Assembly: GCA_030704615.1 (NCBI GenBank)
Contig: CM060734.1
Location: 37,696,001-37,760,000 of the forward strand
DNA: 64,000 nucleotides
Source: Takakia lepidozioides
Lineage: Eukaryota; Plantae; Bryophyta
Reading direction: 5' to 3'
This document shows positions 5,946 through 42,929 of the stretch, one piece after another. Made by a program: the position numbers and the translations under genes. A model generated the notes under the pieces. That model was not told the DNA's origin. It searched no databases and saw only the letters and a program-made list of their open reading frames with translations. Each line of letters opens with the position of its first letter. Position 1 is the first letter of the stretch.

Positions 5946-6054
5946 ACGATGCTTGGCACTAAGAAAGACCGGACCCCAAAAAACGCTAAGTCCCAGCCCT
6001 GCACATCGCGACCTAGCAGCCCTAAATTCGAGCCAACTTTTGAAGTTTTTGAAT

Positions 6055-8808: not shown

Positions 8809-9720
8809 GTCTGATGAGAGGGCAAAACAGGCTGAAATAGGTTGAAGAAGAAGGTGCCCTCACCACACTGTCCTTGACCTTGTGTCATGACCCATGGAGG
8901 ATTTGACAGACAAAAGGACCTCTTGTGTGTGATGCTTGTGTCTGTAGTCAGGGTCGGATTGGTCAGTGAGAACCTGCACCACGGTGCAGCTGAGCAGGCA
9001 GACATTGAAACACGGCCTGCTAAGACCAAGCTGACTCTCCCAAGAACCTTGTAAACATCAGGAAGAATATCAAATCATGGTACTAACAGGAGCCAACAAC
9101 CCACATTTGCAGGATGGACAAACTTCTTCACATCGTACATTAAGAAAAAGCCACACCTTGCGATTGCGGTTGTCGAACCCTCGTGAAGGATCTTTAAAAA
9201 ACTCATGCCAGCTCTGCTCCATGATTCAAATTTAGGGCCGAGTCTGATGAGAGGGCAAAACAGGCTGAAATAGGTCTAAGAAGAAGGTGCCCTCACCTCA
9301 TGACCCATGGAGATTTGACTGACCATGAACCCAAGAGGACCTCTTGTGTGTGCTGCTTGTGTCTGTAGTTAGGTAATATCGGATTGGTCAGTGAGAACCA
9401 CCACGGTGCAGCTGAGTGGGCAGAGATTGAAACACGGCCTGCTAAGACCAAGCTAACTCTCCCAAGAACCTTGTAAACATCAGGAAGAATACCAAATCAT
9501 GGTACTAATAGGAGCCAACAACCCACATTTGCAGGATGGACAAACTTCTTCACATCGTACATTAAGAAAAAGCCACACCTTACGATTGCGGTTGTCCCAC
9601 CATCGTGAAGGATCTTTAAGAAACTCATGCCAGCTCTACTCCGTGCTGTAAAATCAGGGTCGAGCGGGTAGAGATTGAAACACGGCCTGCTAAGACGAAG
9701 CTGACTCTCCCAAGAACGGC
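8809..9720. repeat. ~425-bp tandem duplication of PPR-associated flanking sequence
   Basis: AGGGCCGAGTCTGATGAGAGGGCAAAACAGGCTGAAATAGG at ~8811 and ~9234 (variant at ~5857). The downstream blocks are near-identical. Confidence 0.85.
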
Positions 9721-10904: not shown

Positions 10905-11395
10905 CAGTCCACCAGTGCCTCCACGAGTCAGCACAGGCCGTCCACAGGTCAACACGGGCCACCACAGACCAGCACAGGCCCACACAGATCACTGGTCACA
11001 GCCGTCACAGCCCCACACAGGCCACAGCCTGTCACAGCACATCACAACCCCAAAGGCCATAGGCACAGCCTGTCACAGCCCTACAAAGGTCACAGGGGTC
11101 ACAACCCCAAAGGCCACAGGCACAGCCTATCACAGCCCTACAAAGGTCACAGGGGTCACAGCCCCAAAGGCCACAGTCTGTCACAGCCCCTCACAGCTCG
11201 TCACAGCTTGTCACAGCCCTACACAGGTCACAGGGGTCACAGCCCCACAGGGCACAGCCCGTCACAGCCCCACAGGCCACAGGGCACAGCCTGTCACAGC
11301 CCGCCACAGCCCATCACAGCCCATCACAGCCTGTCACAGCTCGCCATAGCCTCTCACAGCCCCTCACAGCCCCACAAGCCACATGGCACAGTTTA
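10905..11395. repeat. Degenerate CACAGCC/GTCACAG minisatellite
   Basis: Repeated gtcacagccc and cacagg units, including ~60-bp higher-order copies. Confidence 0.85.
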
Positions 11396-13889: not shown

Positions 13890-16739
13890 GCCGTCGTAAG
13901 AGAAATTTATGGATGTGCCAGACGGCATGGTTGTGTCGAGTAATACGAAGGTCATGAATAACGGGATGTGTGCATTGGCTAAGCAGGTGAAGCCAAGTGT
14001 TGCGGGTCGAGTGGGTGCTAGTACATAGCGGACAATTTGAGGAGGGGAAAATGTGGGGCTAGAAGGTGTGTTTCCGCTGGTGGCCCATGTACTGTGCATA
14101 TCTGAATTTAAGGGTCTGTTTTATTTGAGCGTCAGTTGCAAGATATGTGTGCCAGAAATGATTAGATAGTTTATGGTTCAGTACTGAGGATTGTGTCCAT
14201 TTCTGGATATGTAGTTTAGTGTGGCTAGCGGAAGTTGAGGCTTGTTTGTTAGTTTTTCGAGTAAGGGAGGTAAAGAGGTTCCGGATAAGACAAGGTTCCG
14301 GGGGGCCAGGAACGGGGTGGATGAACCAGAATGGATGGGCATGGGCAACATGGATGGGGTCTGGAGTGGGATCCACCGGGGGCCGGGTGGCCCCGCATTG
14401 GGCAAAGAGGTCAGCCATTTCGTTGCCAATGATACGGCCAGTGTGCGAGCGAACTTTGAAAGGATGGGTTGGTTCAGGGAGATATCAAGATGGACGATGG
14501 CGGCGATGAGGTTCTGATCAAGGTGGTGGTGGTGCGAGGAAGGGTGGGAGAGGTGGTTACGGATGAGAAATAGTGAGGTAAGGCTATTGGTAAAGATATA
14601 GTGGGGTGGGGGGGGAGTGAGGGGAGTTGGATGAGGGCATCATGGATGGCCATGAGTTCAGCACGAAGGATGTTGGCGGCCGGGAAGGCACAGGGCAAGC
14701 CCTTGGTTGGTAGCGGCATGGTAAATATCGTATCTAGCCCTAGGGCCCGCTATGAGGGATCCATCAGTGTAGTGCGAGTGGGCAGGTGGGTACTTAAGAG
14801 GTAGAACCTGTTGGGATACCGGGGGTTCACTATGAGCGGGCATAATAAATGAGATAGGGGGGTAGGGTAGCGCTTTAGACCATGTTTTACCTGGGTTTAT
14901 TCTGAGGTAAGGGCTGGGAGTAGCGGGTTGGGGCGGGGGGATAGGAAATGTAGTTGCTTTTATGCCATGCATGTCAGTTAGGAGGCGAGTAAGGCGGGAA
15001 GGAAAGTCGGTGGGTATGGTGGCAGCGGTGGGGGTGCGATGGACAAGCAATATTAGGGTTAGGGTGGGTTCCCCGTGTTTTAGGTATTTGGGAAGGGGCA
15101 GGGTGCGGGATTATTTGATCTGGTTTGGATCAATAGCAGGTAAAGGTGTGACCTCAGGGGGGAGGTGGAGGAGAGGGTGCCTAGAGGTTGGCAGTTGTTG
15201 GTGTGTTAGAAGAAAGATGGTGGCGGCGGAGGAGGGGGAGGATTGGGCCGCGAGGCGAGCCCATTGGAGAGCTTCATGCGCGAATAGCCTAGGGGGTGGA
15301 TGTGCAAGCCCGCGACCAGTCCATGTATGTTGTGTGGCAAAGCCGGAGGCTCCAAATATGCAATCCCGGGGGTGGGGGCTAGAGTATGACAAGAGCTCCA
15401 TCGGGCATGTGAGCGGGCTAGAGTAATAAGAGTGTGTGATTTGAAAAGAGGTTATAAGAAATGCTAGGATGTCAGGTGGGAGGGTGGTGTGAGAGTAGGC
15501 TTGGGTTAGCTTGTGGGAGATGCTCGGTTTTTTTGGGGGGGTATCACCTAAGTAGCGGTCAACAAGTCAGCAAACTTCTGTAGCAAAGTCTTGCCTAGGG
15601 GGCAGTAGCTGACTGGGTAACGGGTTGGAGTTTGAGAATCTGTGCCATAGCCAAGTGAGTCTGTCATTGGAGATGAGTCCATTGTAGCGGCCATAAAGAG
15701 CGTATAGACTGGACATACGTTTGCCAGAGCGTATTATGGGGGGGATGTGCATGATATCTTTGTCAGGGTTGCATTCCGTTATGCATACATGCACCTCAGG
15801 AGCAACTAGGGGGTTATGGACATATCGGGCGTCCAACAACTGGGTTTGGGAAGTATGTTGTTGGTGTATATGAGCTAGGTAGTTGGTAGTAGTTGTTTTA
15901 TGGAATGCGGTGAGAAGGTCAAGGTTATGGGCCGGGTCACAGTCGTCATGGGACCCAAAAAGGTCATCCTCTGTTTGCCAGGTGTTGTCTTCTGGTGGGT
16001 AGCTAGCCCATTTACATAGATAGAAAGTGTCAAGGCATGTGGCGTCAAACTCATCGGTAGAGGTTTGAGTTTTGATCCCTAAAATAGCTTCAATAATGGA
16101 GGCTTCCGGATTGTCATGATTGGTAGAGTGTGGGGTTAGGAGTGAAGGCGGGTGAGCTCTAGGGACAACGGGGTGTGTGGGGTAGCCGGGCCGGAAGAGG
16201 TGGGTGTGGTCAAGATTGACCCTGTCTCATGGATGGGGGCGGGGTGATAGAGTGGAGGGGGAGGGGGGGGGGGGGGGGGGTCGGTAGTTGTAGGATCTAT
16301 GTTAGTCATAGAAGCTTTGAGCTTATGGAGAATAGAAGAGGCTGGGGTTGTTCTATATTGAGGGTGGAGATCTTGTTTGTTATGGGGGAAGAGTGTGCAG
16401 GGTAGGTCACACTCAAGTGTGCAGGAAGTGGTCATATGGCAGAAAAGAGAACGAAGGTGGGATAGGTATCGGCAAGTTTTGACGGTAGCTCTGGAATATT
16501 TGAGGGTGAACTCGTTAGGAGTGAGTAGTCTGTAGCTAGAGGCTGTGGTGAGTTGGGCAAGTGTCATGATGTGCTGTACTTTAAAGTAAGCAAGGATGGG
16601 CAATTTTTGGCGGGGGTGTAGTTCCTTGAATGCAGAGAGGAGTGGACTGTCAAGCCAAGCTTGTTCCGGGGTGAGGTGGTGTTAGGATAGCCGGGGAGAT
16701 CGGTTTGTATGCTAATGTTCATTTGACGTAGGATGTATA
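13890..16739 (-). mobile_element. LINE 3' half: chromodomain, Dam-like methylase remnant, RNase H, CCHC knuckle + RHN motif; 3'-truncated and degenerate
   Basis: Chromodomain FYLCKWASYPPEDNTWQTEDDL (~15960-16030). Dam-like SSPLTCP...RDCIFGA...WTGRGLAHPP (~15290-15425). RNase H HYTDGS, ILRAELMAI and IIGNEMAD (14410-14780). CPLC..WLHLLSQC..RITRHNHAV (13920-14036). Confidence 0.85.
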
Positions 16740-17318
16740 CTCCAGTCTGTGAGGTCCACAAAACATCAAATAGATTGAAGGAACAATCCAGGCAGTCCAT
16801 GCAACCCCCATCTCCAACAACAGTTTGTAACCATGAATGTGAATTCCACGCACACATTGCAAACAGGACAACAAGGACACACAACCATCCCATTTCAAAT
16901 TTGGCCCAGAATTAAACCAAAAGAAAACTTCATATCAAGTGTCGCAGTCATCACAATCAGTGTCCACCTCCTGTGCTATGTCATCTACAAAGATTCTGGC
17001 CCCAACACCACGTGTTCTACGAAGGCCGTCGTAAGGTGGACTCGGAGTGCCATGAATGGACATGCTTGCTGCGAGTGCCTCCGCATAGACAAGTAGCACG
17101 CAAGACCGAGGAGGACTGCAAACAAGTCCAAATAGGTGTGATAGCCCTGGAGGGCAAGTGGAAGCACGCGGACTCCTGCGCATGTCCACAAAACCCCATT
17201 TTTAACACAATGATGCAATGCACAAGTCCAACAAAGAGGATGTCTCCCATGTGCACTTTGCCTGAAGAACAGCGACTCTCGATATTGAAACAACAATGAA
17301 AGCATGCACAGGTTGAAC

Positions 17319-17639
17319 TTACTCACAGGCAAAGTCGGAGTCCAGCTCCTTGTCAGAAGTCTCCTCTGTATCAGTATCAACGGGACGGGGCTTCGGAAGG
17401 ACTTGAGAAGTGTGTCCACCCAAACCCATCAGGAGGTTCTTGTAAATCTCAGCATCCCCTTCAATCCAAAAGACATGTCGCGCACTGGCCTTGCAAGCGT
17501 GGTAAGAAGCACCTGCAATGGAATAGAATGAATGAAGAAGACATTGAAGACACATTCGGAACGGTGGGAAGTGCTGAAAGTGCAAGCTCAATCAAACCTC
17601 ATGAAATGTGAATGTTGAAGAGACGAACCTGTGCCCATC
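17319..17639 (-). pseudogene. Inverted C-terminal part of the DNA methyltransferase gene (end of motif I onward)
   Basis: MGT|G-ASYHACKASARHVFWIEGDAEIYKNLL, with a phase-consistent GT-AG intron at 17628-17513. Confidence 0.7.
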
Positions 17640-20600
17640 TTGGTGTTAAATTTGGACTTCCAGGGCAGGTTTATGATGATGAAATAACCATTCAGTGGCA
17701 GCTCAAACAGTGTGCGCCAACGCACAATGTTTGAGCTGAACATGTAAGTGTTTTTTCAGATTGAAATTCGGCATTTAGGGCACGTTTCTGAGGATGAAAT
17801 AACCCCTCACTGGCAGCTCAAACAGTGTGCGCCAACGCACACTGTTTGAGCTGTACATGTCACTGCTTTTTTGGTGTTAAATTCGGACTAACAGGGCACG
17901 TTTATGATAATGAAATAACCATTCACTGGCAGCTCAAACAGTGTGCGTTGGCGCACACTGTTTGAGCTGAACATGTAAGTGTTTTTTCAGATTGAAATTC
18001 AGCATTTAGGGCACGTTTCTGAGGATGAAATAATCCCTCACTGGCAGCTCAAACAGTGTGCGCCAACGCACACTGTTTGAGCTGTACATGTCACTGCTTT
18101 TTTGGTGTTAAATTCGGACTTCCAGGGCAGGTTTATGATGATGAAATAACCATTCAGTGGCAGCTCAAACAGTGTGCGTTGGCGCACACTCTTTGAGCTA
18201 AACATATAAGTGTTTTTTCCGATTGAAATTTGGCATTTAGGGCACGTTTCTGAGGATGAAATAACCATTCAGTGGCAGCTCAAACAGTGTGCGCCAACGC
18301 ACACTGTTTCAGGTGAACATGTAAGTGTTTTTTCCGATTGAAATTCGGCATTTAGGGCACGTTTCTGAGGATGAAATAACCATTCAGTGGCAGCTCAAAC
18401 AGTGTGCGCCAACGCACACTGTTTGAGCTGTACATGTTACTGCTTTTTTGGTGTTAAAATCGGACTTCCAGGGCAGGTTTATGATGATGAAATAACCATT
18501 CAGTGGCAGCTCAAAGAGTGTGCACCAACACACACTGTTTGAGCTGATCATGTAAGTGTTTTTTCCGATTGAAATTCGGACTTCCAGGGCAGGTTTATGA
18601 TGATGAAATAACCATTCAGTGGCAGCTCAAACAATGTGCGTTGGCGCACACTGTTTGAGCTGAACATGTAAGTGTTTTTTCCGATTGAAATTCGGCATTT
18701 TGGGCACGTTTTTGAGGATGAAATAACCATTCAGTGGCAGCTCAAATAGTGTGCGCCAACGCACACTGTTTGAGCTGAACATGTAAGTGTTTTTTCCGAT
18801 TGAAATTCGGCATTTAGGGCACGGTTCTGAGGATGAAATAACAATTTAGTGGCAGCTCAAACAGTGTGCGCCAACGCACACTGTTTGAGCTGTACATGTC
18901 ACTGCTTTTTTGGTGTTAAATTTGGACTTCCACGGCAGGTTTATGATGATGAAATAACCATCTAGTGGCAGCTCAAACAGTGTGCGCCAACGCACACTGT
19001 TTGAGCTGTACATGTCACTGCTTTTTTGGTGTTAAATTCGGACTTCCAGGGCACGTTTATGATGATGAAATAACCATTCAGTGGCAGCTCAAACAGTGTG
19101 CGTTGGCGCACAATGTTTGAGCTGAACATGTAAGTGTTTTTTCAGATTGAAATTCGGCATTTAGGGCACGTTTCTGAGGATGAAATAACCCCTCACTGGC
19201 AGCTCAAACAGTGTGCGCCAACGCACACTGTTTGAGCTGTACATGTCACTGCTTTTTTGGTGTTAAATTCGGACTTCCAGGGCACGTTTATGATAATGAA
19301 ATAACCATTCAGTGGCAGCTCAAACAGTGTGCGTTGGCGCACACTGTTTGAGCTGAACATGTAAGTGTTTTTTCAGATTGAAATTCGGCATTTAGGGCAC
19401 GTTTCTGAGGATGAAATAATCCCTCACTGGCAGCTAAAACAGTGTGCGCCAACGCACACTGTTTCAGGTGAACATGTAAGTGTTTTTTCCGATTGAAATT
19501 CGGCATTTAGGGCTTGTTTCTGAGGATGAAATAACCATTCAGTGGCAGCTCAAACAGTGTGCGCCAACGCACACTGTTTGAGCTGTACATGTTACTGCTT
19601 TTTTGGTGTTAAAATCGGACTTCCAGGGCAGGTTTATGATGATGAAATAACCATTCAGTGGCAGCTCAAAGAGTGTGAGCCAACACAAACTGTTTGAGCT
19701 GATCATGTAAGTGTTTTTTCCGAATGAAATTCGGACTTCGAGGGCAGGTTTATAATGATGAAATAACCATTCAGTGGCAGCTCAAACAATGTGCGTTGGC
19801 GCACACTGTTTGAGCTGAACATGTAAGTGTTTTTTCCGATTGAAATTCGGCATTTTGGGCACGTTTTTGAGAATGAAATAACCATTCAGTGGCAGCTCAA
19901 ATAGTGTGCGCCAACGCACACTGTTTGAGGTGAACATGTAAGTGTTTTTTCCGATTGAAATTCGGCATTTAGGGCACGTTTCTGAGGATGAAATAACCAT
20001 TTAGTGGCAGCTCAAACAGTGTGCGCCAACGCACACTGTTTGAGCTGTACATGTCACTGCTTTTTTGGTGTTAAATTTTGACTTCCTGGGCAGGTTTATG
20101 ATGATGAAATAACCATTCAGTGGCAGCTCAAACAGTGTGCGCCAACGCACAATGTTTGAGCTGAACATGTAAGTGTTTTTTCATATTGAAATTCGGCATT
20201 TAGGGCACGTTTCTGAGGATGAAATAACCCCTCACCGGCAGTTTAAACAGTGTGCGCCAACGCACACTGTTTGAGCTGTACATGTCACTGCTTTTTTGGT
20301 GTTAAATTCGGACTTCCAGGGCAGGTTTATGATGATGAAATAACCATTCAGTGGCAGCTCTAACAGTGTGCGTTGGCGCACACTGTTTGAGTTGAACATG
20401 TTAGTGTTTTTTCAGATTGAAATTCGGCATTTAGGGCACGTTTCTGAGGATGAAATTATCCCTCACTGGCAGCTCAAACAGTGTGCGCCAACGCACACTG
20501 TTTGAGCTGTACATGTCACTGCTTTTTCGGTGTTAAATTTGGACTTCCAGGGCAGGTTAATGATGATGAAATAACCATCTAGTGGCAGCTCAAACAGTGT

Positions 20601-23600
20601 GCGCCAACGCACACTGTTTGAGCTGTACATGTCACTGCTTTTTTGGTGTTAAATTCGGACTTCCAGGGCATGTTTATGATGATGAAATAACCATTCAGTG
20701 GCAGCTCAAACAGTGTGCGTTGGCGCACAATGTTTGAGCTGAACATGTAAGAGTTTTTTCAGATTGAAATTCGGCATTTACGGCACGTTTCTGAGGATGA
20801 AATAACCCCTCACTGGCAGCTCAAACAGTGTGCGCCAACGCACACTGTTTGAGCTGTACATGTCACTACTTTTTTGGTGTTAAATTCGGACTTCCAGGGC
20901 ACGTTTATGATAATGAAATAACCATTCAGTGGCAGCTCAAACAGTGTCCGTTGGCGCACACTGTTTGAGCTGAACATGTAAGTGTTTTTTCAGATTGAAA
21001 TTCGGCATTTAGGGCACGTTTCTGAGGATGAAATAATCCCTCACTGGCAGCTCAAACAGTGTGCGCCAACGCACACTGTTTGAGCTGTACATGTCACTGC
21101 TTTTCTGGTGTTAAATTCGGACTTCCAGGGCAGGTTTATGATGATGAAATAACCATTCAGTGGCAGCTCAAACAGTGTGCGTTGGCGCACACTCTTTGAG
21201 CTAAACATATAAGTGTTTTTTCCGATTGAAATTTGGCATTTAGGGCACGTTTCTGAGGATGAAATAACCATTCAGTGGCAGCTCACACAGTGTGCGCCAA
21301 CGCACACTGTTTCAGGTGAACATGTAAGTGTTTTTTCCGATTGAAATTCGGTATTAAGGGCACGTTTCTGAGGATGAAATAACCATTCAGTGGCAGCTCA
21401 AACAGTGTGCGCCAACGCACACAATTTGAGCTCATGTTACTGCTTTTTTGGTGTTAAAATCGGACTTCCAGGGCAGGTTTATGATGATGAAATAACCATT
21501 CAGTGGCACCTCAAAGAGTGTGCGCCAACACACACTGTTTGAGCTGAACATGTAAGTGTTTTTTTCCGATTGAAATTCGGCATTAAGGGCATGTTTCTGA
21601 GGATGAAATAACCATTCAGTGGCAGCTCAAATAGTGTGCGCCAACGCACACTGTTTGAGCTGTACATGTCACTGCTTTTTTGGTGGTAAATTCGGACTTC
21701 CAGGGCAGGTTTATGATGATAAAATAACCATTCAGTGGCAGCTCAAACAGTGTGCATTGGCGCACACTGTTTGAGCTGAACATATAAGTGTTTTTTCCGA
21801 TTGAAATTCGGCATTTAGGGCACGTTTCTGAGGATGAAATAACCATTCAGTGGCAGCTCAAACAATGTGCGTTGGCCGACAATGTTTGAGCTGAACATGT
21901 AAGTGTTTTTTCAGATTGAAGTTCGGCATTTAGGGCACGTTTCTGAGGATGAAATAATCCCTCACTGGCAGCTCAAACAGTGTGCGCCAACACACACTGT
22001 TTGAGCTTTACATGTCACTGCTTTTTTGGTGTTAAATTCGGACTTACAGGGCACGTTTATGATAATGAAATAACCATTCAGTAGCAGCTCAAAGAGTGTG
22101 CGCCAACGCACACTGTTTGAGGTGAACATGTAAGTGTTTTTTCCGATTGAAATTCGGCATTTAGGGCACGTTTCTGAGGATGAAATAACCATTTAGTGGC
22201 AGCTCAAACAGTGTGCGCCAACGCACACTGTTTGAGCTATACATGTCACTGCTTTTTTGGTGTTAAATTTCGACTTCCAGGGCAGGTTTATGATGATGAA
22301 ATAACCATTCAGTGGCAGCTCAAACAGTGTGCGCCAACGCACACTGTTTGAGCTTTACATGTCACTGCTTTTTTGGTGTTAAATTCGGACTTCCAGGGCA
22401 GGTTTATGATGATGAAATAACCATTCAGTGGCAGCTCAAACCGTATGCGTTGGCGCACAATGTTTGAGCTGAACATGTAAGTGTTTTTTCAGATTGAAAT
22501 TCGGCATTTAGGGCACGTTTCTGAGGATGAAATAACCCCTCACTGGCAGCTCAAACAGTGTGCGCCAACGCACACTGTTTGAGCTGTACATGTCACTGCT
22601 TTTTTGGTGTTAAATTCGGACTTACAGGGCACGTTTATGATAATGAAATAACCATTCAGTGGCAGCTCAAACAGTGTGCGTTGGCGCACACTGTTTGAGC
22701 TGAACATGTAAGTGTTTTTTCAGATTGAAATTCGGCATTTAGGGCACGTTTCTGAGGATGAAATAATCCCTCACTGGCAGCTAAAACAGTGTGCGCCAAC
22801 GCACACTGTTTCATGTGACATGTAAGTGTTTTTTCCGATTGAAATTCGGCATTTAGGGCTCGTTTCTGAGGATGAAATAACCATTCAGTGGGAGCTCAAA
22901 TAGTGTGCGCCAACGCACACTGTTTGAGTTGTACATGTTACTGCTTTTTTGGTGTTAAAATCGTACTTCCAGGGCAGGTTTATGATGATGAAATAACCAT
23001 TCAGTGGCAGCTCAAAGAGTGTGCGCCAACACACACTGTTTGAGCTGATCATGTAAGTGTTTTTTCCGATTGAAATTCGGACTTCAAGGGAGGTTTATGA
23101 TGATGAAATAACCATTCAGTGGCAGCTCAACCAATGTGCGTTGGCGCACACTGTTTGAGCTGAACATGTAAGTGTTTTTTCCGATTGAAATTCGGCATTT
23201 TGGGCACGTTTTTGAGGATGAAATAACCATTCAGTGGCAGCTCAAATAGTGTGCGCCAACGCACACTGTTTGAGGTGAACATGTAAGTGTTTTTTCCGAT
23301 TGAAATTCGGCATTGAGGGCACGTTTCTGAGGATGAAATAACCATTTAGTGGCAGCTCAATCAGTGTGCGCCAACGCACAATGTTTGAGCTGTACATGTC
23401 ACTGCTTTTTTGGTGTTAAATTTGGACTTCCAGGGCAGGTTTATGATGATGAAATAACCATTCAGTGGCAGCTCAAACAGTGTGCGTTGGCGCACACTGT
23501 TTGAGCTGAACATGTAAGTGTTTTTTCATATTGAAATTCGGCATTTAGGGCACGTTTCTGAGGATGAAATAATCCCTCACTGGCAGGTCAAACAGTGTGC

Positions 23601-26600
23601 GCCAACGCACACTGTTTGAGCTGTACATGTCACTGCTTTTTTGGTGGTAAATTCGGACTTCCAGGGCAGGTTTATGATGATAAAATAACCATTCAGTGGC
23701 AGCTCAAACAGTGTGCATTGGCGCACACTGTTTGAGCTGAACATATAAGTGTTTTTTCCGATTGAAATTCGGCATTTAGGGCACGTTTCTGAGGATGAAA
23801 TAACCATTCAGTGGCAGCTCAAACAGTGTGCGTTGGCCGACAATGTTTCAGCTGGACATGTAAGTGTTTTTTCAGATTGAAATTCGGCATTTAGGGCACG
23901 TTTCTGAGGATGAAATTATCCCTCACTGGCAGGTCAAACAGTGTACGCCAACGCACACTGTTTGAGCTGTACATGTCACTGCTTTTTTGGTGTTAAATTC
24001 GGACTTACAGGGCACGTTTATGATAATGAAATAACCATTCAGTGGCAGCTCAAACAGTGTGCGTTGGCGCACACTGTTTGAGCTGAACATGTAAGTGTTT
24101 TTTCAGATTGAAATTCGGCATTTAGGGCACGTTTCTTAGGATGAAATAACCCCTCACCGGCAGTTCAAACAGTGTGCGCCAACGCACACTGTTTGAGCTG
24201 TACATGTCATTGCTTTTTTGGTGTTAAATTCGGACTTCCAGGGCACGTTTATGATGATGAAATAACCATTCAGTGGCAGCTCAAACAGTGTGCGTTGGCG
24301 CACAATCTTTGAGCTGAACATGTAAGTGTTTTTTCAGATTGAAATTCGGCATTTAGGGCACGTTTCTGAGGATGAAATAACCCCTCACTGGCAGCTCAAA
24401 CAGTGTGCGCCAACGCACACTGTTTGAGCTGTACATGTCACTGCTTTTTTGGTGTTAAATTCGGACTTACAGGGCACGTTTATGATAATGAAATAACCAT
24501 TCAGTGGCAGCTCAAACAGTGTGCGTTGGCGCACACTGTTTGAGCTGAACATGTAAGTGTTTTTTCAGATTGAAATTCGGCATTTAGGGCACGTTTCTTA
24601 GGATGAAATAACCCCTCACCGGCAGTTCAAACAGTGTGCGCCAACGCACACTGTTTGAGCTGTACATGTCACTGCTTTTTTGGTGTTAAATTCGGACTTC
24701 CAGGGCACGTTTCTGAGGATGAAATAACCATTCAGTGGCAGCTCAAACAGTGTGCGTTGGCGCACAATCATTGAGCTGAACATGTAAGTGTTTTTTCAGA
24801 TTGAAATTCGGCATTTAGGGCACGTTTCTGAGAATGAAATAACCCCTCACTGGCAGCTCAAATAGTGTGCGCCAACACACACTGTTTGAGCTGTACATGT
24901 CACTGCTTTTTTGGTGTTAAATTCGGACTTACAGGGCACGTTTATGATTATGAAATAACCATTTAGTGGCAGCTCAAACAGTGTGCGATGGCGCACAATC
25001 TTTGAGCTAAACATATACGTGTTTTTTCCGATTGAAATTTGGCATTTAGGGCACGTTTTTGAGGATGAAATAACCATTCAGTGGCAGCTCAAACAGTGTG
25101 CGCCAACGCACACTGTTTCAGGTGAACATGTAAGTGTTTTTTCCGATTGAAATTCGGCATTTAGGGCACGTTTCTGAGGATGAAATAACCATTCAGTGGC
25201 AGCTCAAACAGTGTACGCCAACGCACACTGTTTGAGCTGTACATGTTCTTGCTTTTTTGGTGTTAAAATCGGACTTCCAGGGCAGGTTTATGATGATGAA
25301 ATAACCATTCAGTGGCAGCTCAAAGAGTGTGCACCAACACACACTGTTTGAGCTGAACATGTAAGTGTTTTTTCAGATTGAAATTCGGCATTTAGGGCAC
25401 GTTTCTGAGGATGAAATAATCCCTCACTAGCAACCCAAACAGTGTGCGCCAACACACACTGTTTGAGCTGTACATGTCACTGCTTTTTTGGTGTTAAATA
25501 TGGACTTACAGGGCACGTTTATGATAATGAAATAACCATTCAGTGGCAGCTCAAACAGTGTGCGTTGGCGCACACTGCTTGAGCTGAACATGTAAGTGTT
25601 TTTTCAGATTGAAATTCGGCATTTAGGGCACGTTTCTGAGGATGAAATAATCCCTCACTAGCAGCTCAAACAGTGTGCGCCAACACACACTGTTTGAGCT
25701 GTACATGTCACTGCTTTTTTGGTGTTAAATTTGGACTTCCAGGGCAGGTTTATGATGATGAAATAACCATTCAGTGGCAGCTCAAATAGTGTGCGCCAAC
25801 ACACACTGTTTGAGCTGATCATGTAAGTGTTTTTTCCGATTGAAATTCGGACTTCCAGGGCAGGTTTATGATGATGAAATAACCATTCAGTGGCAGCTCA
25901 ACCAATGTGCGTTGGCGCACACTGTTTGAGCTGAACATGTAAGTGTTTTTTCCGATTGAAATTCGGCATTTTGGGCACGTTTTTGAGGATGAAATATCCA
26001 TTCAGTGGCAGCTCAAATAGTGTGCGCCAACGCACACTGTTTGAGGTGAACATGTAAGTGTTTTTTCCGATTGAAATTCGGCATTGAGGGCACGTTTCTG
26101 AGGATGAAATAACCATTTAGTGGCAGCTCAATCAGTGTGCGCCAACGCACACTGTTTGAGCTGTACATGTCACTGCTTTTTTGGTGTTAAATTTGGACTT
26201 CCAGGGCAGGTTTATGACGATGAAATAACCATTCGGTGGCAGCTCAAACAGTGTGCGTTGGCGCACACTGTTTGAGCTGAACATGTAAGGGTTTTTTCAT
26301 ATTGAAATTCGGCATTTCGGGCACGTTTTTGAGGGTGAAATAATCCCTCACTGGCAGGTCAAACAGTGTGCGCCAATGCACACTGTTTGAGCTGTACATG
26401 TCACTGCTTTTTTGGTGGTAAATTCGGACTTCCAGGGCAGGTTTATGATGATAAAATAACCATTCAGTGGCAGCTCAAACAGTGTGCATTGGCGCACACT
26501 GTTTGAGCTGAACATATAAGTGTTTTTTCGATTGAAATTCAGCATTTAGGGCACGTTTCTGAGGATGAAATAACCATTCAGTGGCAGCTCAAACAGTGTG

Positions 26601-29600
26601 CGTTGGCCGACAATGTTTGAGCTGAACATGTAAGTGTTTTTTCAGATTGAAATTCGGCATTTGGGGCACGTTTCTGAGGATGAAATAATCCCTCACTGGC
26701 AGCTCAAACAGTGTGCGCCAACACACACTGTTTGAGCTGTACATGTCACTGCTTTTTTGGTGTTAAATTCGGACTTACAGGGCACGTTTATGATAATGAA
26801 ATAACCATTCAGTGGCAGCTCAAAGAGTGTGCGCCAACGCACACTGTTTGAGGTGAACATGTAAGTGTTTTTTCCGATTGAAATTTGGCATTTAGGGCAC
26901 GTTTCTGAGGATGAAATAACCATTTAGTGGCAGCTCAAACAGTGTGCGTTGGCGCACACTGTTTGAGCTATACATGTCACTGCTTTTTTGGTGTTAAATT
27001 TCGACTTCCAGGGCAGGTTTATGATGATGAAATAACCATTCAATGGCAGCTCAAACAGTGTGCGCCAACGCACACTGTTTGAGCTTTACATGTCACTGCT
27101 TTTTTGGTGTTAAATTCGGACTTCCAGGGCAGGTTTATGATGATGAAATAACCATTCAGTGGCAGCTCAAACAGTGTGCGTTGGCGCACAATGTTTGAGC
27201 TGAACATGTAAGTGTTTTTTCAGATTGAAATTCGGCATTTAGGGCACGTTTCTGAGGATGAAATAATCCCTCACTAGCAGCTCAAACAGTGTGCGCCAAC
27301 ACACACTGTTTGAGCTGTACATGTCACTGCTTTTTTGGTGTTAAATTTGGACTTCCAGGGCAGGTTTATGATGATGAAATAACCATTCAGTGGCAGCTCA
27401 AATAGTGTGCGCCAACACACACTGTTTGAGCTGATCATGTAAGTGTTTTTTCCGATTGAAATTCGGACTTCCAGGGCAGGTTTATGATGATGAAATAACC
27501 ATTCAGTGGCAGCTCAACCAATGTGCGTTGGCGCACACTGTTTGAGCTGAACATGTAAGTGTTTTTTCCGATTGAAATTCGGCATTTTGGGCACGTTTTT
27601 GAGGATGAAATAACCATTCAGTGGCAGCTCAAATAGTGTGCGCCAACGCACACTGTTTGAGGTGAACATGTAAGTGTTTTTTCCGATTGAAATTCGGCAT
27701 TGAGGGCACGTTTCTGAGGATGAAATAACCATTTAGTGGCAGCTCAATCAGTGTGCGCCAACGCACACTGTTTGAGCTGTACATGTCACTGCTTTTTTGG
27801 TGTTAAATTTGGACTTCCAGGGCAGGTTTATGACGATGAAATAACCATTCGGTGGCAGCTCAAACAGTGTGCGTTGGCGCACACTGTTTGAGCTGAACAT
27901 GTAAGGGTTTTTTCATATTGAAATTCGGCATTTCGGGCACGTTTTTTAGGGTGAAATAATCCCTCACTGGCAGGTCAAACAGTTTGCGCCAATGCACACT
28001 GTTTGAGCTGTACATGTCACTGCTTTTTTGGTGGTAAATTCGGACTTCCAGGGCAGGTTTATGATGATAAAATAACCATTCAGTGGCAGCTCAAACAGTG
28101 TGCATTGGCGCACACTGTTTGAGCTGAACATATAAGTGTTTTTTCCGATTGAAATTCAGCATTTAGGGCACGTTTCTGAGGATGAAATAACCATTCAGTG
28201 GCAGCTCAAACAGTGTGCGTTGGCCGACAATGTTTGAGCTGAACATGTAAGTGTTTTTTTCAGATTGAAATTCGGCATTTGGGGCACGTTTCTGAGGATG
28301 AAATAATCCCTCACTGGCAGCTCAAACAGTGTGCGCCAACACACACTGTTTGAGCTGTACATGTCACTGCTTTTTTGGTGTTAAATTCGGACTTACAGGG
28401 CACGTTTATGATAATGAATAACCATTCAGTGGCAGCTCAAAGAGTGTGCGCCAACGCACACTGTTTGAGGTGAACATGTAAGTGTTTTTTTCCGATTGAA
28501 ATTTGGCATTTAGGGCACGTTTCTGAGGATGAAATAACCATTTAGTGGCAGCTCAAACAGTGTGCGTTGGCGCACACTGTTTGAGCTATACATGTCACTG
28601 CTTTTTTTGGTGTTAAATTTCGACTTCCAGGGCAGGTTTATGATGATGAAATAACCATTCAATGGCAGCTCAAACAGTGTGCGCCAACGCACACTGTTTG
28701 AGCTTTACATGTCACTGCTTTTTTGGTGTTAAATTCGGACTTCCAGGGCAGGTTTATGATGATGAAATAACCATTCAGTGGCAGCTCAAACATTGTGCGT
28801 TGGCGCACAATGTTTGAGCTGAACATGTAAGTGTTTTTTCAGATTGAAATTCGGCATTTAGGGCACGTTTCTGAGGATGAAATAACCCCTCACTGGCAGC
28901 TCAAACAGTGTGCGCCAACGCACACTGTTTGAGCTGTACATGTCACTGCTTTTTTGGTGTTAAATTCGGACTTACAGGGCACGTTTATGATAATGAAATA
29001 ACCATTCAGTGGCAGCTCAAACAGTGTGCGTTGGCGCACACTGTTTGAGCTGAACATGTAAGTGTTTTTTCAGATTGAAATTCGGCATTTAGGGCACGTT
29101 TCTGAGGATGAAATAATCCCTCACTGGCTGCTAAAACAGTGTGCGCCAACGCACACTGTTTCAGGTGAACATGTAAGTGGTTTTTCCGATTGAAATTCGG
29201 CATTTAGGGCTCGTTTCTGAGGATGAAATAACCATTCAGTGGCAGCTCAAACAGTGTGCGCCAACGCACACTGTTTGAGCTGTACATGTTACTGCTCTTT
29301 TGTTGTTAAAATCGGACTTCCAGGGCAGGTTTATGATGATGAAATAACCATTTAGTTGCAGCTCAAAGAGTGTGCGCCAACACACACTGTTTGAGCTGAT
29401 CATGTAAGTGTTTTTTCCGATTGAAATTCGGACTTCCAGGGCAGGTTTATGATGATGAAATAACCATTCAGTGGCAGCTCAAACAATGTGCGTTGGCGCA
29501 CACTGTTTGAGCTGAACATGTAAGTGTTTTTTCCGATTGAAATTCGGCATTTTGGGCACGTTTTTGAGAATGAAATAACCATTCAGTGGCAGCTCAAATA

Positions 29601-32600
29601 GTGTGCGCCAACGCACACTGTTTGAGGTGAACATGTAAGTGTTTTTTCCGATTGAAATTCGGCATTTAGGGCACGTTTCTGAGGATGAAATAACCATTTA
29701 GTGGCAGCTCAAAGAGTGTGCGCCAACGCACACTGTTTGTGCTGTACATGTCACTGCTTTTTTGGTGTTAAATTTTGACTTCGTGGGCAGGTTTATGATG
29801 ATGAAATAACCATTCAGTGGCAGCTCAAACAGTGTGCGCCAACGCACAATGTTTGAGCTGAACATGTAAGTGTTTTTTCATATTGAAATTCGGCATTTAG
29901 GGCACGTTTCTTAGGATGAAATAACCCCTCACCGGCAGTTCAAACAGTGTGCGCCAACGCACACTGTTTGAGCTGTACATGTCACTGCTTTTTTGGTGTT
30001 AAATTCGGACTTCCAGGGCACGTTTATGATGATGAAATAACCATTCAGTGGCAGCTCAAACAGTGTGCGTTGGCGCACAATGTTTGAGCTGAACATGTAA
30101 GTGTTTTTTCAGATTGAAATTCGGCATTTAGGGCACGTTTCTGAGGATGAAATAACCCCTCACTGGCAGCTCAAACAGTGTGCGTTGGCGCACACTGTTT
30201 GAGCTGTACATGTCACTGCTTTTTTGGTGTTAAATTCGGACTTACAGGGCACGTTTATGATAATGAAATAACCATTCAGTGGCAGCTCAAACAGTGTGCG
30301 TTGGCGCACAATGTTTGAGCTGAACATGTAAGTGTTTTTATAAATTGAAATTCGGCATTTAGGGCACGTTTCTGAGGATGAAATAATCCCTCACTGGCAG
30401 CTCAAACAGTGTGCGCCAACGCACACTGTTTGAGCTGTACATGTCACTGCTTTTTTGGTGTTAAATTCGGACTTCCAGGGCAGGTTTATGATGATGAAAT
30501 AACCATTCAGTGGCAGGTCAAACAGTGTGCGTTGGCGCACACTCTTTGAGCTAAACATATAAGTGTTTTTTCCGATTGAAATTTGGCATTTAGGGCACGT
30601 TTTTGAGGATGAAATAACCATTCAGTGGCAGCTCAAACAGTGTGCGCCAACGCACACTGTTTGAGGTGAACATCTAAGTGTTTTTTCCGATTGAAATTCG
30701 GCATTTAGGGCACGTTTTTGAGGATGAAATAACCATTTAGTGGCAGCTCAAACAGTGTGCGCCAACGCACACTTTTTGAGCTATACATGTCACTGCTTTT
30801 TTGGTGTTAAATTTCGACTTCCAGGGCAGGTTTATGATGATGAATACCATTCAATGGCAGCTCAAACAGTGTGCGCCAACGCACACTGTTTGAGCTTTAC
30901 ATGTCACTGCTTTTTTGGTGTTAAATTCGGACTTCAGGGCAGGTTGATGATGAAATAATAACCATTCAGTGGCAGCTCAAACAGTGTGCGTTGGCGCACA
31001 CTGCTTGAGCTGAACATGTAAGTGTTTTTTCAGATTGAAATTCTGCATTTAGGGCACGTTTCTGAGGATGAAATAATCCCTCACTAGCAGCTCAAACAGT
31101 GTGCGCCAACACACACTGTTTGAGCTTTACATGTCACTGTGCTTTTTTTGTGTTAAATTTGGACTTCCAGGGCAGGTTTATGATGATGAAATAACCATTC
31201 AGTGGCAGCTCAAAAAGTGTGCACCAACGCACACTGTTTGAGCTGAACATGTAAGTGTTTTTTCAGATTGAAATTCGGCATTTAGGGCACGTTTCTGAGG
31301 ATGAAATAACCCCTCACTGGCAGCTCAAACAGTGTGCGCCAACGCACACTGTTTGAGCTGTACATGTAACTGCTTTTTTTGGTTTTAATTTCGGACTTCC
31401 AGGGCACGTTTATGATAATGAAAAATAACCATTCAGTGGCAGCTCAAACAGTGTGCGTTGGCGCACAATGTTTAGCTGAACATGTAGTGTTTTTTCAGAT
31501 TGAAATTCGGTATTTAGGGCACGCTTCTGAGGATGAAATAACCCCTCACTGGCAGCTCAAACAGTGTGCGCCAACACACACTGTTTGAGCTGTACATGTC
31601 ACTACTTTTTTGGTGTTAAGTTCGGACTTACAGGGCACGTTTATGATAATGAATAACCATTCAGTGGCAGCTCAAACAGTGTGCGTTGGCGCACACTGTT
31701 TGAGCTGAACATGTAAGTGTTTTTTCAGATTGAAATTCGGCATTTAGGGCACGTTTCTGAGGATGAAATAATCCCTCACTGGCAGCTCAAACAGTGTGCG
31801 CCAACGCACACTGTTTGAGCTGTACATGTCACTGTTTTTTTGGTGTGTAATTTCGGACTTCCAGGGCAGGTTTATGATGATGAAATAACCATATCAGTGG
31901 CAGGTCAAACATGTGTGTTGGCGCACACTCTTTGAGCTAACATATAAGTGTTTTTTCCGATTGAAATTTGGCATTTTACGGCACGTTTCTGAGGATGAAA
32001 TAACCATTCAGTGGCCTCAAACAGTGTGCGCCAACGCACACTGTTTCAGGTGACATGTATTGTTTTTTCCGATTGAAATTCGGGCATTTAAGGGCACGTT
32101 TCTGAGGATGAAATAACCATTCAGTGGCAGCTCAAACAGTGTGCGCCAACGCACACTGTTTGAGCTGTACATGTTACTCTACTGCTTTTTTTGGTGTTAA
32201 AATCGGACTTCCAGGGCAGATTTATGATGATGAAATAACACATTCAGTGGCAGCTCAAAGAGTGTGCGCCAACACACACTGTTTGAGCTGAACATGTAAG
32301 TGTTTTTTCCGATTGAAATTCGGACTTCCAGGGCAGGTTTATGATGATGAAATAACCATTTAGTGGCCTCAAACAATGTGCGTTGGCGCACACTGTTTGA
32401 GCTGAACATGTAAGTGTTTTTTTTTTCCGATTGAAATTCGGCATTTTGGGCACGTTGTGAGGATGAAATAACCATTCAGTGGCAGCTCAAATAGTGTCGC
32501 CAATGCACACTCCTTTGAGCTGTACATGTCACTTCTCCACTGCTTTTTTGGTGTTAAATTCGGACTTCCAGGGCACGTTTATATAATGAAATAACCATTC

Positions 32601-33516
32601 AGTGGCAAGCTCAAACAGTGTGCGTTGGCGCACAAGTTTGAGCTGAACATGTAAGTGTTTTTTTTTCAGATTGAAATTCGGCATTTAGGGCACGTTTCTG
32701 AGATGACATAATCCCTCACTGGCAGCTCAAACAGTGTGCGCCAATTGCACACTCTTGAGATGTTACATGTCCTTGCTTTTTGGTGTTAATTCGGAGTTCC
32801 ATCCAGGGCACGTTTATGATATGAATAACCTTCATGGCAAGCTCAACCAGTGTGCGTTGGCGCACACTTTTGAGCTGAACATTTAAGTGTTTTTTCAGAT
32901 TGAAATTCGGCATTGAGGGCACTTTCTGAGGATGAAATAATCCCATCACACTGGCAGGAGGTCCAAACAGTGTGCGCCAACGTCACACTGTTTGATGATG
33001 AAATAACCATTAAGTGGCAGCTCAAACAGTGTGCGGTTGGCGCACACTGTTTGAGCTGAACATATAAGTGTTTTTCGATTGAAATTCGGCATTTAGGGCA
33101 CGTTTCTGAGGATGAAATAACCATTCAGTGGCAGCTCAAACAGTGGTGCGCCAACGCACACTGTTTGAGGTGACATAGTGTTTTTTTTCCGATTGAAATT
33201 CGGCATTTAGGGCCGTTTCTGAGGATGAAAATACCATTCAGTGGCAGCTCAAACAGTGTGCACCAACGCACACTGTTTGAGGTGAACATGTAAGTGTTTT
33301 TTTCCGATTGAAATTGGGCATTTAGGGCACGTTTCTGAGGATGAATAACCATTTAGTTGCAGCTCAAACAGTTTTGCGCCAACGCACACTGTTTGAGCTG
33401 TACATGTCACTGCTTTTTTGATGTTAAATTTGGACTTCCAGGGCAGGTTTATGATGATGAAATAACCATTCAGTGGCAGCTCAAACAGTGTGCGCCAACG
33501 CACACTGTTCGAGCTG
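17640..33516. repeat. Satellite array of ~137 monomers, 115 bp (type A) and 116 bp (type B), each with a 40-bp palindrome; higher-order repeats present
   Basis: Type A reads gagctgaacatgtaagtgttttttc(c/a)gattgaaattcggcatttagggcacgtttctgaggatgaaataa.... Type B reads gagctgtacatgtcactgcttttttggtgttaaattcggacttccagggcaggtttatgatgatgaaataa.... Both share cagctcaaacagtgtgcg-NNNN-cgcacactgtttgagctg. Confidence 0.98.
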
Positions 33517-33519: not shown

Positions 33520-36500
33520 AGTGTGGCAGATGAGGTCCCTTCGGGTCAGGAGAGGAGATAATTGTTGATGTGGACGATGAGTTCTATGAAAGCAAAGCCG
33601 CTGAGATGCTGGGGGGTCAGAAGGTAAACTCTCAGCTTGTGGTGCAAAGTATGCTTGCCCCGGGTGGGAGGTTGAAGATTCCCCGTGTGTAGGTTGGTTT
33701 CCATGCCCGTCGTTCGTACACCCCTCGTCAAGGACATTCTCAAGCTGGAGGCCAAGTTTGTGCATGGGTATTTGGATGGATCCGCAGTCTTTTACGTTTC
33801 TACTAGGGATTCCAAAGGTAATGAGCTCCTCGTGGATCAGTCAATCGTGGACTCCTGGGACCCCATTTGGAGACAGCTGAAAGATGTTGCACGTTTGGGA
33901 TGGGACCACCGCTTGCTTGCATGGATGGCTGTCATTGGGAGGCTGCACTCACATGAGGAAGAGTGGCATTACTCTGTTCGATCGTGGTGCGGATTGTGAC
34001 GGGAACATGTGGGTCTTCTGACGGCAATGAAATGTGAACAGGTTGGTTTCCTCATTCTACATGTTCACTTGTGGTTCCATTCTTCTTTGATTGAAGACCT
34101 TGAATTTCATTCTGACTTACAGATATCATTCTGCAGAGGAACGGAGACATCGCATGTCAAAACGAGTTTGGTTCACACACTGTATAGGATACAAAGGATA
34201 GGCAGATGCCCTTTACCAACTTCAAGACCATCCTTTCAGCAGAGTGTACAAGAAGTGCGAAATCTCCAAGACATCGGAAACGTGGTACTCGTTGACCCGA
34301 GGCTTTCATGGAGTACATGTACACGGTGAGATACATCTTCCTTCATCTGGTCTTCCATATTCCACATGGTTTATTTCTGTTTGTTTCCCTTGACCTTGTG
34401 CTGATGCAACTCTCTTGCATTCCCTTGCAGCAAGACATTGCAGATGTAGGGGAGCGTGGCAAACTGGAATACTACAGCTCTACCTCTGAGGAGAGAAGGA
34501 CAGCAAGGGGGTTGAGAGTCGCATCCAGAAAGAGATGACCGCTACAAGAAGGACTATAATGAGTGCTTTCGTGAAGCAGTTGAGAATTGCCGACCCATCA
34601 TTCGGACCGCAGTTTCTCCTGGAGATAAAAACCATTATAACAAGCCAGGCAAGCCAGAAATGGCCCAGGAGAAGTTGCACAGGCTGTCTACCGCCGTTGT
34701 GTCTCCAGAACAAAAGGTGAAGTGGCTGCAGATATGGAACTCCGATCCCACAGTTAGGGATACCCACATGTTCCCAAGGCCGGAGAAAGAGAAGAAGACC
34801 CAGCGTGTCATTCTTGTCAGTGACAATGTGCTGGACACCTGGCTTCACAAGGCCACTTACTGGAGCCAGGTGTGATGTCCTTCCCTGTGTCACTGTCTTT
34901 TCTCTTTTCCTGTCCTTATCTTTCTATTGCCTCTTACATTTGCTGTGATTGCTTTTGGTTTCATTCTTGCATTTGTATTGTTTTGCAGTTGGAAGAAAGG
35001 GCCAGATCGGTTCTGCATACTCACTGGCTGACTATGGCATCAGTATGATAGCACCGAAGGTGTCCTTCAAAGCATACATGAGGAAATGGAGAGCCACAGT
35101 GTGGCACTCTTGTTTCTTTAGAGAGTTCAGCAAGGAGGGTGGCATCAGTCGAACAAATGAGCTGGACCAGCAAGAAAAAGGAGAGGAAGCCTGGAAACGA
35201 TGCCTTTACAGGTGCACACTCTTGCACTACTTATTTGTGCTGTGGTTGCAATGTGTTGTGTGGCATACTGTTTAAGGGGGTCTTCCTGGTGTGATGGAAA
35301 AGTTGCCACACAATATTTCCATTGTAAAATGAGGCTGTCTCTGTTGCTGCAGGTACATAAAGTTTGTTCTCCTGGAAGAGAATTGCCTGGACAAACATCC
35401 AGATTTCGTGGACCTGTGGCTTGTCCCTGCTGGCAACCAGACCATGTTCACTACTGGGATCTTGCATGACTGGGGCCAAGACCATCTTTCTTCTTGTGGT
35501 TGGTATTTGGATTGCCCTCCTTCTGAGACCCCAGCTCCAGAGGTGTCTTTGAGGAGAGAGAATGACCGTATTGCAGCCACTGCCGCAGCAACCGACCTCG
35601 ACATTCATGAACGAAATTTGAGGACTCTTGCAGAGAAGGAGCCTCCCGCTCACGATACCCCAGGTAGAGGAAGAAAGGCAAAGGGAAAAGATGTTGCTGG
35701 TGTTGTGGGGAAGGGAAGGGGTAGAGGGAAGGTGGCACAAGGGCAGGGAAGTGTTGCAGATATTGGGCCCTATGGAGCATGTCCAGCAGACTCCACCGCA
35801 TGGTAGGGGATCCGGGAGAAAAAACAAGGGGGTGGTTGATCCCAAGGACCCGTACCATGCAGTGGAACATCCCACGAGGGTCATTCGCCCAACCAGGTTG
35901 GAGATGGCCAACGTCGGGTTCCTTGCCATGATGGAGTCGAAGAATCTGATTACAAGGGCGAGCCATCACCAGTGTGGGACAGGATTGTGCAGTTCCTCAG
36001 CACGGTGCGTGTTCTCTTTGGGTTCTGTGGCTTCTGTTGTTTTTGTCTGCTGTGGGCATGGATCGTTTCTAAACTTGTGAGAATTCCATTGTATTTTTGT
36101 TTGCAGGCTAAAATGACCAAATCCTGGGTGAACGGGAAGGAAAAGCCATATGCAGCCGAACTCATCATCTTGGACATCCCTGATGGGTTGGCAGTCCCGG
36201 ATATCCCTCCATCGGTGCTTGTCCGGGTTGGAATGCTTTTGATGAGCGCTACTGGCGGTGGGTTTTCTCCTTTTGCACCTTCTTCCTGTCCGATGCAGGT
36301 GTTTTGGTGCTCATCCAGTCCATCGACAGTCGGTGTCGCCGTGCACTTTCCAGCTATTTGAAAGCCTCGGGCATGAGAGTCGTGAAGACATGGAATTGTG
36401 TGAACAGCATGTACCTTACGAAGGGGATCGCCCGGGAGAGATGGTGAGTTTGCCTTCTTCTTCCTCTTCTTGGTTGTTCTCCGATGGGGTTGTATAGGTC

Positions 36501-36836
36501 GCTCGAACTCATATGTAGGGGCCCGATTTTTTTTTGCTTCTTAGTTCCTTGTGGATGTCATGTTCGCAGACTCGTCTGTTTGAAGCTGTTTGTCTCGTCC
36601 GGGTGCATCCACAAACGACTCCGGCCGGCATTACCGAGTTTGCCATCACTCATGGGGCCAAGTTCATAGATGACAGGACAGATCCCCCCACGGATGACAT
36701 GCATCACAACTACGTCGACAGCAACGTGTGCTTGCGAAGGGAGAATGGGTTCCTTGGAGAGGGGCGAGGGAGAGGAGTCCAGCTTTCATTCAAACGATTG
36801 TGGAGTGCTGCACCTACACAGACGCCAGAGTTCTGG
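33520..36836 (+). pseudogene. Multi-exon ParB-like domain + beta-class N4C/N6A DNA methyltransferase gene (N-terminal part, ends in motif I)
   Basis: ParB-like CRLVSMPVVRTPL..GY..GSAVFYVS..VWDG[N]HRLLAW (~33690-33930, frameshifted). Motif IV-like AELIILDIPDGL (~36155-36190). WRGARERSPAFIQTIVECCTYTDARVL (36755-36835) leads into motif I. Several GT-AG introns. Confidence 0.65.
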
Positions 36837-42773: not shown

Positions 42774-42929
42774 AAGGATGTTTTCTTAGCAAGATGCAAG
42801 TGTCTTGCTTCATTCATTGATCTATGTAGCTACTCAGACCATCCACCATTTCCTGAGAGTCTTGACCATCATGTACTGTCAGAGAGGGCTGGAGGATCAG
42901 ATGAGGGTTTGACAGATTCAACATCATGG

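Follow-up and report, generated by a model that had tools for sequence, protein, structure and literature searches.

Kelchner and Wendel are said to have described, in 1996, minute inversions of hairpin loops in non-coding plastid DNA. Recurrent inversions at hairpins with 18-bp arms are documented in plastid DNA (PMC2903610, PMC3123225), as are the trnH-psbA inversions (PMC2903610). In nuclear DNA, inversion of a spacer by polymerase template switching has been described in yeast (PMC8604942) and, as short switches, in human (PMC5453318), and the maintenance of hairpins has been addressed as well (PMC8794818). Inverted repeats are also known from giant transposons of algae. In Plavaka transposons of red algae (PAG3, Bostrychia), tandem inverted-repeat arrays lie next to an accessory gene with a ParB domain, and the authors suggest that the ParB-domain protein binds its own element (10.1101/2025.02.11.637652); the Sola1 element of Ectocarpus carries an accessory gene that combines a ParB-like part with a DNA methyltransferase (PMC12477816). 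Here, we analyze 64,000 nucleotides of plant-type eukaryotic nuclear DNA from the bryophyte Takakia lepidozioides (GenBank assembly GCA_030704615.1, contig CM060734.1, positions 37,696,001 to 37,760,000 of the forward strand; hereafter, the window), in which a 15.9-kb satellite array built on a single 18-bp-arm hairpin, with a loop that occurs in two opposite orientations, adjoins a gene of a ParB/Srx-like family. Our findings depict this array as probably a transposon-derived, dyad-symmetric satellite of a land-plant nuclear genome that sits at a dead locus and carries hairpin-loop micro-inversions of a known type.

The array occupies positions 17637 to 33516 on the plus strand and comprises 138 co-oriented monomers of 115/116 bp in two subtypes, A and B, as charted by Tandem Repeats Finder (TRF), a monomer table, and alignment to a consensus. 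TRF reported a single array (17662 to 33516) with a period of 115 (132.6 + 4.6 copies) and a dimer period of 231 bp, and higher-order repeats longer than this dimer are also present. Each monomer joins a 40-bp palindrome to a non-palindromic part of 75/76 bp. A fuzzy search of the whole window recovered 138 palindromes of the 18+4+18 form, all of them within the array. An earlier, sequence-only reading had placed a perfect 18-bp-arm hairpin in essentially every monomer; the palindrome is indeed found in all 138, but it is perfect in only 31, with 1 to 3 arm mismatches in most copies and at most 3 substitutions per arm in 126/138. The same reading correctly held that the remainder of the monomer keeps its direction, as the 75-bp parts all run the same way, with no minus-strand match of at least 30 nt. 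It also had the array ending exactly at a right arm. The last right arm does end at 33516, but the final ~2.5 kb are degenerate and rich in indels. Along this plus-strand edge (30858 to 33516), each monomer shows 14-27 differences from its type consensus instead of ~5, and the indel columns increase to 8-24, reflecting either old monomers beside the gene start or homopolymer consensus errors of the assembly. A coding array, in which the 231-bp dimer would amount to 77 codons, was rejected, as no open reading frame (ORF) of at least 150 amino acids lies inside.

The 4-bp core of the palindrome reads CCAA in 88 copies and TTGG in 48, the remaining two being an ATGG that derives from TTGG and a variant with an indel. 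None of the 138 is intermediate between CCAA and TTGG. The minus strand of the CCAA palindrome is, letter for letter, the plus strand of the TTGG palindrome, as exemplified by two perfect copies at 17814-17853 (core CCAA, 17832-17835) and 17930-17969 (core TTGG, 17948-17951), whose cores stand where they had been placed before. The two forms are nearly equal in predicted DNA hairpin stability (-23.1 and -23.0 kcal/mol, respectively; z ~ -9.5). Several marks of a micro-inversion are present, i.e., a spacer that is an exact reverse complement, unchanged flanks, a stable stem-loop, and a change made in one step without intermediates. With four simultaneous changes that yield the exact reverse complement, the TTGG state is a true loop inversion. 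In this respect, the array resembles the minute inversions of plastid DNA, where a spacer between inverted repeats of ~18 bp turns into its exact reverse complement and both states are found in close relatives. Unlike the plastid case, it is a nuclear satellite whose one hairpin, with its 4-bp loop, is present in 138 tandem copies that hold an internal genealogy for counting events.

Both cores occur in both subtypes, with TTGG mostly in type A, as the sequence-only reading had noticed (B/CCAA, 52; A/TTGG, 47; A/CCAA, 36; B/TTGG, 3). Because of the A/B dimer structure, opposite cores meet in 88 of the 137 adjacent palindrome pairs, versus 64 ± 5 expected by chance. Such neighbors make up an inverted repeat that may reach 40 bp and encloses a 76-nt spacer, and the dimer is predicted to fold at -63 kcal/mol (z -10.5). 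None of these 88 pairs shows an inverted 76-bp spacer.

As had been proposed earlier, core orientation was mapped on a monomer genealogy, here a maximum-likelihood tree of 136 monomers built on all alignment columns except the core, with the partial monomers m132 and m137 left out. The core changes state 8 times on this tree, compared with 39 times (range 29 to 46) when labels are shuffled; thus, orientation has mostly been inherited through amplification. The other columns require 2.4 steps on average, and only column 10 exceeds the core. Among pairs of monomers with near-identical neighbors, the core differs in 4 to 7% of the cases and the focal monomer at 1.3 to 2.3% of its sites. The likelihood of a core change is therefore ~2.5 to 5 times that of a substitution at any single site, which agrees with the ratio of tree steps.

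Synteny within the array identified the changes that best resist explanation by simple amplification. Monomer m80 (26931 to 26970) and its duplicate m94 (28549-28588) carry a TTGG core in B-type sequence, and the syntenic orthologue of both, m39 (22200-22239), has CCAA. The triplets m38-40 and m79-81 differ by the 4-bp core and 2 substitutions across 347 bp; triplet m93-95 adds two 1-bp differences in T-run length. Similarly, the B-type monomer m108 (30167 to 30206) has a TTGG core and is identical outside it to the CCAA monomers m97, m42, and m58. Its neighbors on both sides are orthologous to those of its CCAA counterparts, with 347-bp triplets ~99% identical. Since the flanks of m80/m94 and m108 still match those of their CCAA orthologues on either side, neither whole-monomer amplification nor a single unequal crossover explains TTGG at these places, and the scenario that would have traced every TTGG core to one inversion spread with whole monomers fails. 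These monomers thus record at least two secondary orientation changes, and behind each stands a fresh inversion of the loop or, alternatively, a patch of conversion no longer than 28-40 bp that stays within the palindrome. Weaker cases are the CCAA monomers m21/m105, m0, m117, and m66, nested in the TTGG 'a' clade. Altogether, the core inverted at least once and possibly several times. The 8 tree changes, among which m80/m94 and m108 are firm changes of orientation, may reflect recurrence at the same site, and a conversion patch of this size inside the arms looks identical to a flip. Plastid inversions are recurrent, whereas recurrence is less certain here, where patch conversion between copies is possible.

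Variation in the arms differs from that of the remainder of the monomer. Between the A and B consensus sequences, 0/36 arm positions differ, versus 18/75 elsewhere (Fisher p = 6e-4), and within-subtype diversity is lower in the arms than in the rest both for A (0.055 versus 0.090) and for B (0.030 versus 0.040). Such full arm identity between diverged subtypes points to sequence-specific constraint, and the best explanation is that the 18-bp arms are the constrained part of the monomer and the 4-bp loop is free. Arm pairs changed in a compensated manner account for 2/2484 cells, compared with 192 non-complementary ones (167 mismatches and 25 G-T pairs), so the events behind the core changes rarely reach into the stem. 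As a separate observation, the neighboring monomers m75/m76 (26351-26510) and m89/m90 (27968-28126) bear arm variants that mirror each other, GCGCCAATGC and its reverse complement GCATTGGCGC. They represent either two CpG transitions at symmetric sites or a copy of the neighbor's opposite strand. We did not accept m75/m76 as proof of inverted copying between monomers: with two CpG transitions at symmetric sites, this pair does not discriminate between the two origins.

The two ends of the array lie next to parts of one gene. On the right, homology to a decayed spliced gene starts ~30-70 bp past the last palindrome (~33545-33585). Its front and middle exons (33585 to 36841, plus strand), with the predicted ParB/Srx-fold N-terminal domain, are colinear with positions 462-3811 of the closest related locus, L001, a 5.3-kb metagenome contig. 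On the left, the same family is represented by its last exon or exons (17218 to 17591, minus strand), where one stretch is similar to motif I of methyltransferases. The support comes from a tblastx match to L001 3904-4193, which covers 17522-17218 of the window on the minus strand, the exon being separated from the array's left end by 45-115 bp, and from BLASTP (40% identity over 43 amino acids, E 2e-11). Exons are contiguous in L001, where the last one follows the previous one after a GT..AG intron. Thus, the 15.9-kb array is bracketed by two halves of one broken gene, on opposite strands and pointing away from the array. This arrangement implies at least one inversion, one breakpoint of which would lie in the last intron and the other at the array's far end.

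The exons of this gene were searched separately. Exon 33700-33996 has 109 relatives in a library of 1.8 billion proteins, mostly short gene-model fragments, and their alignment shows a conserved FFVxDGNHRLxAW motif. The window copy has lost FFVxDGN, part of the DGNHR motif, to an in-frame deletion of 57 bp; near 33683, a C-run shows an apparent +1 shift, for which a consensus error may be responsible. With the key motif deleted and the gene split by an inversion, the locus is dead. The AlphaFold (AF2) model of one relative, P0012, reached a predicted local distance difference test score (pLDDT) of 84 and a predicted template modeling score (pTM) of 0.72. Its matches in the PDB were sulfiredoxin, ParB, KorB, PadC, SbnI, a serine kinase and, more weakly, Noc. 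Apart from a few low-probability rows, all are folds of the ParB/Srx superfamily, with probabilities of up to 0.98. On this model, the family next to the array has a predicted ParB/Srx-fold N-terminal domain, which bears out the earlier notion that the array adjoins a ParB-type gene, with both gene halves bracketing it. Pfam gave no match for any stop-to-stop ORF of the right-flank gene, nothing relevant for the homologues and the L001 exons, and no helix-turn-helix family in any exon or homologue. The profile of the relatives' alignment (A1) retrieved a chance match only from the PDB sequences, a protein atlas yielded no usable match, and a separate search for homologous proteins gave no candidate. 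Resemblance of the last exon to methyltransferases is at the level of motifs recognized by eye, i.e., a motif-I-like LTASTG/ASVHAC...GKHLFAMEAD and DLPEG instead of DPPY.

The repeat itself was searched for elsewhere. Single-copy occurrences of the palindrome, which the sequence-only reading had suggested looking for, are absent from the rest of the 64-kb window, and an exact-pattern scan of Joint Genome Institute (JGI) metagenome contigs found no match. From these contigs, we also gathered 82 related loci, 80 of them fetched as further relatives. The monomer dimer had no blastn hits in the 82 loci, nor did any perfect-palindrome family (arms of at least 9) occur there near the homologues. Arrays that do lie near homologues on metagenome contigs have 3-20 copies. 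GGCGCC-centered palindromes of the TTCGGCGCCGAA type form 3-4 repeats upstream of ParB-like homologues in L002 (870-1557) and L032 (1562-2437); L021 has a 114-bp array 393 bp upstream of the gene, and L080 has a 57-bp array 2 kb upstream. In the window, a lone perfect palindrome (37815-37839; 11-bp arms, 3-bp spacer) lies ~1 kb past the last mapped exon and is unrelated in sequence to the satellite.

This setting closely recalls that of the algal giant transposons, where a gene with a ParB-like front directly adjoins a tandem inverted-repeat array and its protein is proposed to bind and to mark the element that encodes it. It departs from them in its land-plant host, its 16-kb satellite scale, a dead gene split around the array, and a window devoid of transposase and terminal repeats. 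The array most likely represents an over-amplified cluster of the inverted-repeat sites that giant DNA transposons carry along with ParB/Srx-(methyltransferase-like) accessory genes. The idea of a parS-like binding array, raised by the sequence-only reading, would fit this context, given the algal precedent, and the ParB-like protein may plausibly bind the arms. As in bacterial ParB-parS systems, palindromic and often clustered sites are found near a gene with a ParB/Srx fold; unlike in those systems, no helix-turn-helix was found by Pfam, and the setting is eukaryotic and transposon associated. To our knowledge, the arm sequence does not match the 16-bp parS consensus, and we know of no ParA partner. 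We consider it rather unlikely, albeit worth stating, that the arms would be the cognate site of a transposon-encoded ParB/Srx-methyltransferase-like protein, which would make the locus a ParB/parS-like module of self-recognition or self-marking in a land plant.

Several observations weigh against a transposon-derived satellite with recurrent loop inversions. Searches of the window revealed neither a transposase family nor, between the flanks, any terminal inverted repeats, so the transposon origin that we infer for this particular array rests on flank homology; the copy here is truncated or rearranged. Tandem arrays within 3 kb of homologues are only 1.4-fold enriched across the 82 loci, as assessed by looser k-mer and TRF scans, which turned up numerous short arrays. 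Matches to the ParB/Srx fold are weak by E-value, all of them 0.009 or worse, and the methyltransferase part has no Pfam support. The ParB/Srx domain is, moreover, the nucleotide-binding part of ParB rather than its DNA-reading helix-turn-helix; binding of the palindrome is therefore not implied. Near-absence of compensatory arm changes leaves no covariation evidence for selection on pairing. The retention index of the core (~0.85, computed by hand) is similar to that of other polymorphic columns, and tree homoplasy alone is thus no proof of recurrent inversion. Finally, single-monomer states such as m108 were read from the assembled sequence.

The most serious competitor to recurrent inversion holds that the loop inverted once in an ancestral monomer and that later flips are gene-conversion patches of at most 28-40 bp with both ends in the invariant arms. 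We regard it as possible but doubtful. Secondary flips could indeed be short patches of this kind, as near-identical arms would hide them everywhere except at the core; the same patches would homogenize the arms across A and B, so that arm identity between subtypes is the expected product of palindrome-centered conversion. Columns 10, 78, and 90 are about as homoplastic as the core (8-12 steps), and m108 sits between two TTGG monomers. Conversion tracts would, however, need to be extremely short. Monomer m108 is without the column-29 A that both of its neighbors carry, and m0, m21, and m105 retain that A, 6 bp from the changed core, a pattern that makes either inversion or conversion tracts very short. 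Single crossovers are excluded by the retention of both flanks, and one true inversion is needed in any case. As the source of the later core changes, new inversions are only slightly favored over ultra-short conversions. Very unlikely, in turn, is the explanation that isolated states such as m108 are artefacts of assembly or polishing, with reads of neighboring monomers mis-placed. Homopolymer-length anomalies typical of long-read consensus errors are numerous in the right part of the array, and m108 is a singleton with TTGG monomers on either side, but m80 and m94, in the two copies of a duplicated 14-monomer block, agree in their state, and the combination of A/TTGG with B/CCAA is systematic array-wide.

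Two further explanations concern the origin of the flips and of the array itself. In parvoviruses and adeno-associated virus (AAV), flip and flop are states of the termini of a linear replicon, re-randomized at each replication by hairpin transfer. The two hairpin isomers of the array, each the exact reverse complement of the other, resemble such termini as well as invertase sites, and the sequence-only reading accordingly envisaged an amplified hairpin origin, terminus, or resolution site, a parvovirus-like flip/flop, or a target of a recombinase. Active flipping by hairpin-transfer replication of linear-element termini, cruciform resolution, or a site-specific invertase is nonetheless largely refuted, and we give it next to no weight. 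The palindromes are 138 internal tandem units of chromosomal DNA rather than ends; their orientation is stably inherited, with 8 changes instead of ~39; the change rate is only ~2.5-5 times that of point substitution; and the 76-bp spacers of adjacent opposite-core pairs stay uninverted. No recombinase, replication-initiator, or transposase gene was detected in the window, where the rarity of switching further sets the array apart from invertase targets. It is also improbable, though less so than assembly error, that the array is a chromosomal satellite (e.g., pericentromeric, with a dyad symmetry favoring non-B DNA) unrelated to the gene, the adjacency being due to chance or to a transposon insertion. 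Dyad-symmetric satellites are common, 16 kb far exceeds the arrays near metagenome homologues, and the monomer shows no similarity to the related loci or the JGI contigs. Against this, each array end lies within ~50-70 bp of a part of the same gene (the 5' start at the right end, the last exon at the left end), which would be an unlikely coincidence.

The core flip is thus best read as a mutation and not as a switch, i.e., an inherited and rare change confined to a tight 4-nt loop. That the longer inverted repeats formed by opposite-core neighbors never inverted their spacers argues, together with these properties, against hairpin-transfer replication, terminal resolution, or an invertase and favors template switching within the hairpin or very short exchange from arm to arm. 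Template switching, which had been listed among the possible sources of the core isomers, is a sound mechanism at a hairpin. Like the nuclear template-switch inversions described elsewhere, the change is a single multinucleotide event that inverts the spacer between two arms. Template switching is expected to homogenize the arms, and the scarcity of compensated cells would confine its tracts to the loop and the few base pairs next to it. In the mechanism that we propose, the array would persist and turn over by unequal exchange, with arms that may serve a dimeric protein of the element as a recognition site or else, as a structure, drive their own homogenization. Loop states would arise by inversion of the hairpin spacer, through intra-hairpin template switching in replication or recombination between the arms. 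Once made, an orientation is inherited like any other variant, further changes are rare, on a par with a hot point mutation, and the loop would have two states since inversion is presumably the only frequent way to change it.

Other features of the window lie apart from the array and its gene. Pentatricopeptide repeat (PPR) gene fragments, many of them with stop codons, form tandemly duplicated clusters at 41300-46000 and 5350-9720; the clusters of the two window sides share 78-92% DNA identity in inverted orientation. A non-long-terminal-repeat retrotransposon of the long interspersed nuclear element (LINE) type lies ~1.5 kb to the right of the gene (38404-40862, minus strand), with a reverse transcriptase (PF00078, E 2.5e-15) and a weak apurinic-type endonuclease match below the curated cut-off (PF14529, E 7.7e-4). 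On the other side, an ORF with a chromodomain (PF00385, E 2.6e-8) at ~15.6-16.2 kb, within 15114-16226 on the minus strand, adjoins an ORF with a weak PCIF1_WW-like match (E 1.2e-4). Simple repeats comprise a 9-bp microsatellite (CCCACACAG, 45 copies) and a CACAG-rich minisatellite block (periods of 10-81 bp), at 3982-4395 and 10917-11372, and a perfect 57-bp tandem duplication at 60217-60329 (2.0 copies, 100% identity).

To conclude, 138 copies of one 18-bp-arm hairpin, with a genealogy readable from the flanking 75 bp, constitute a natural experiment that allows the frequency of hairpin-spacer inversion (or else of ultra-short conversion) in nuclear DNA of a plant to be estimated relative to that of point substitution; the ratio here is ~2.5-5. 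The locus would extend to a land plant the association of a ParB-domain accessory gene with an inverted-repeat array reported in 2025 from algal giant transposons. If the arms are indeed the cognate site of the element's own protein, the array would be an amplified landing pad, and its loop inversions would report hairpin or cruciform extrusion in vivo. A cluster of such sites may grow into a 16-kb satellite, which offers a concrete route from transposon to satellite DNA.

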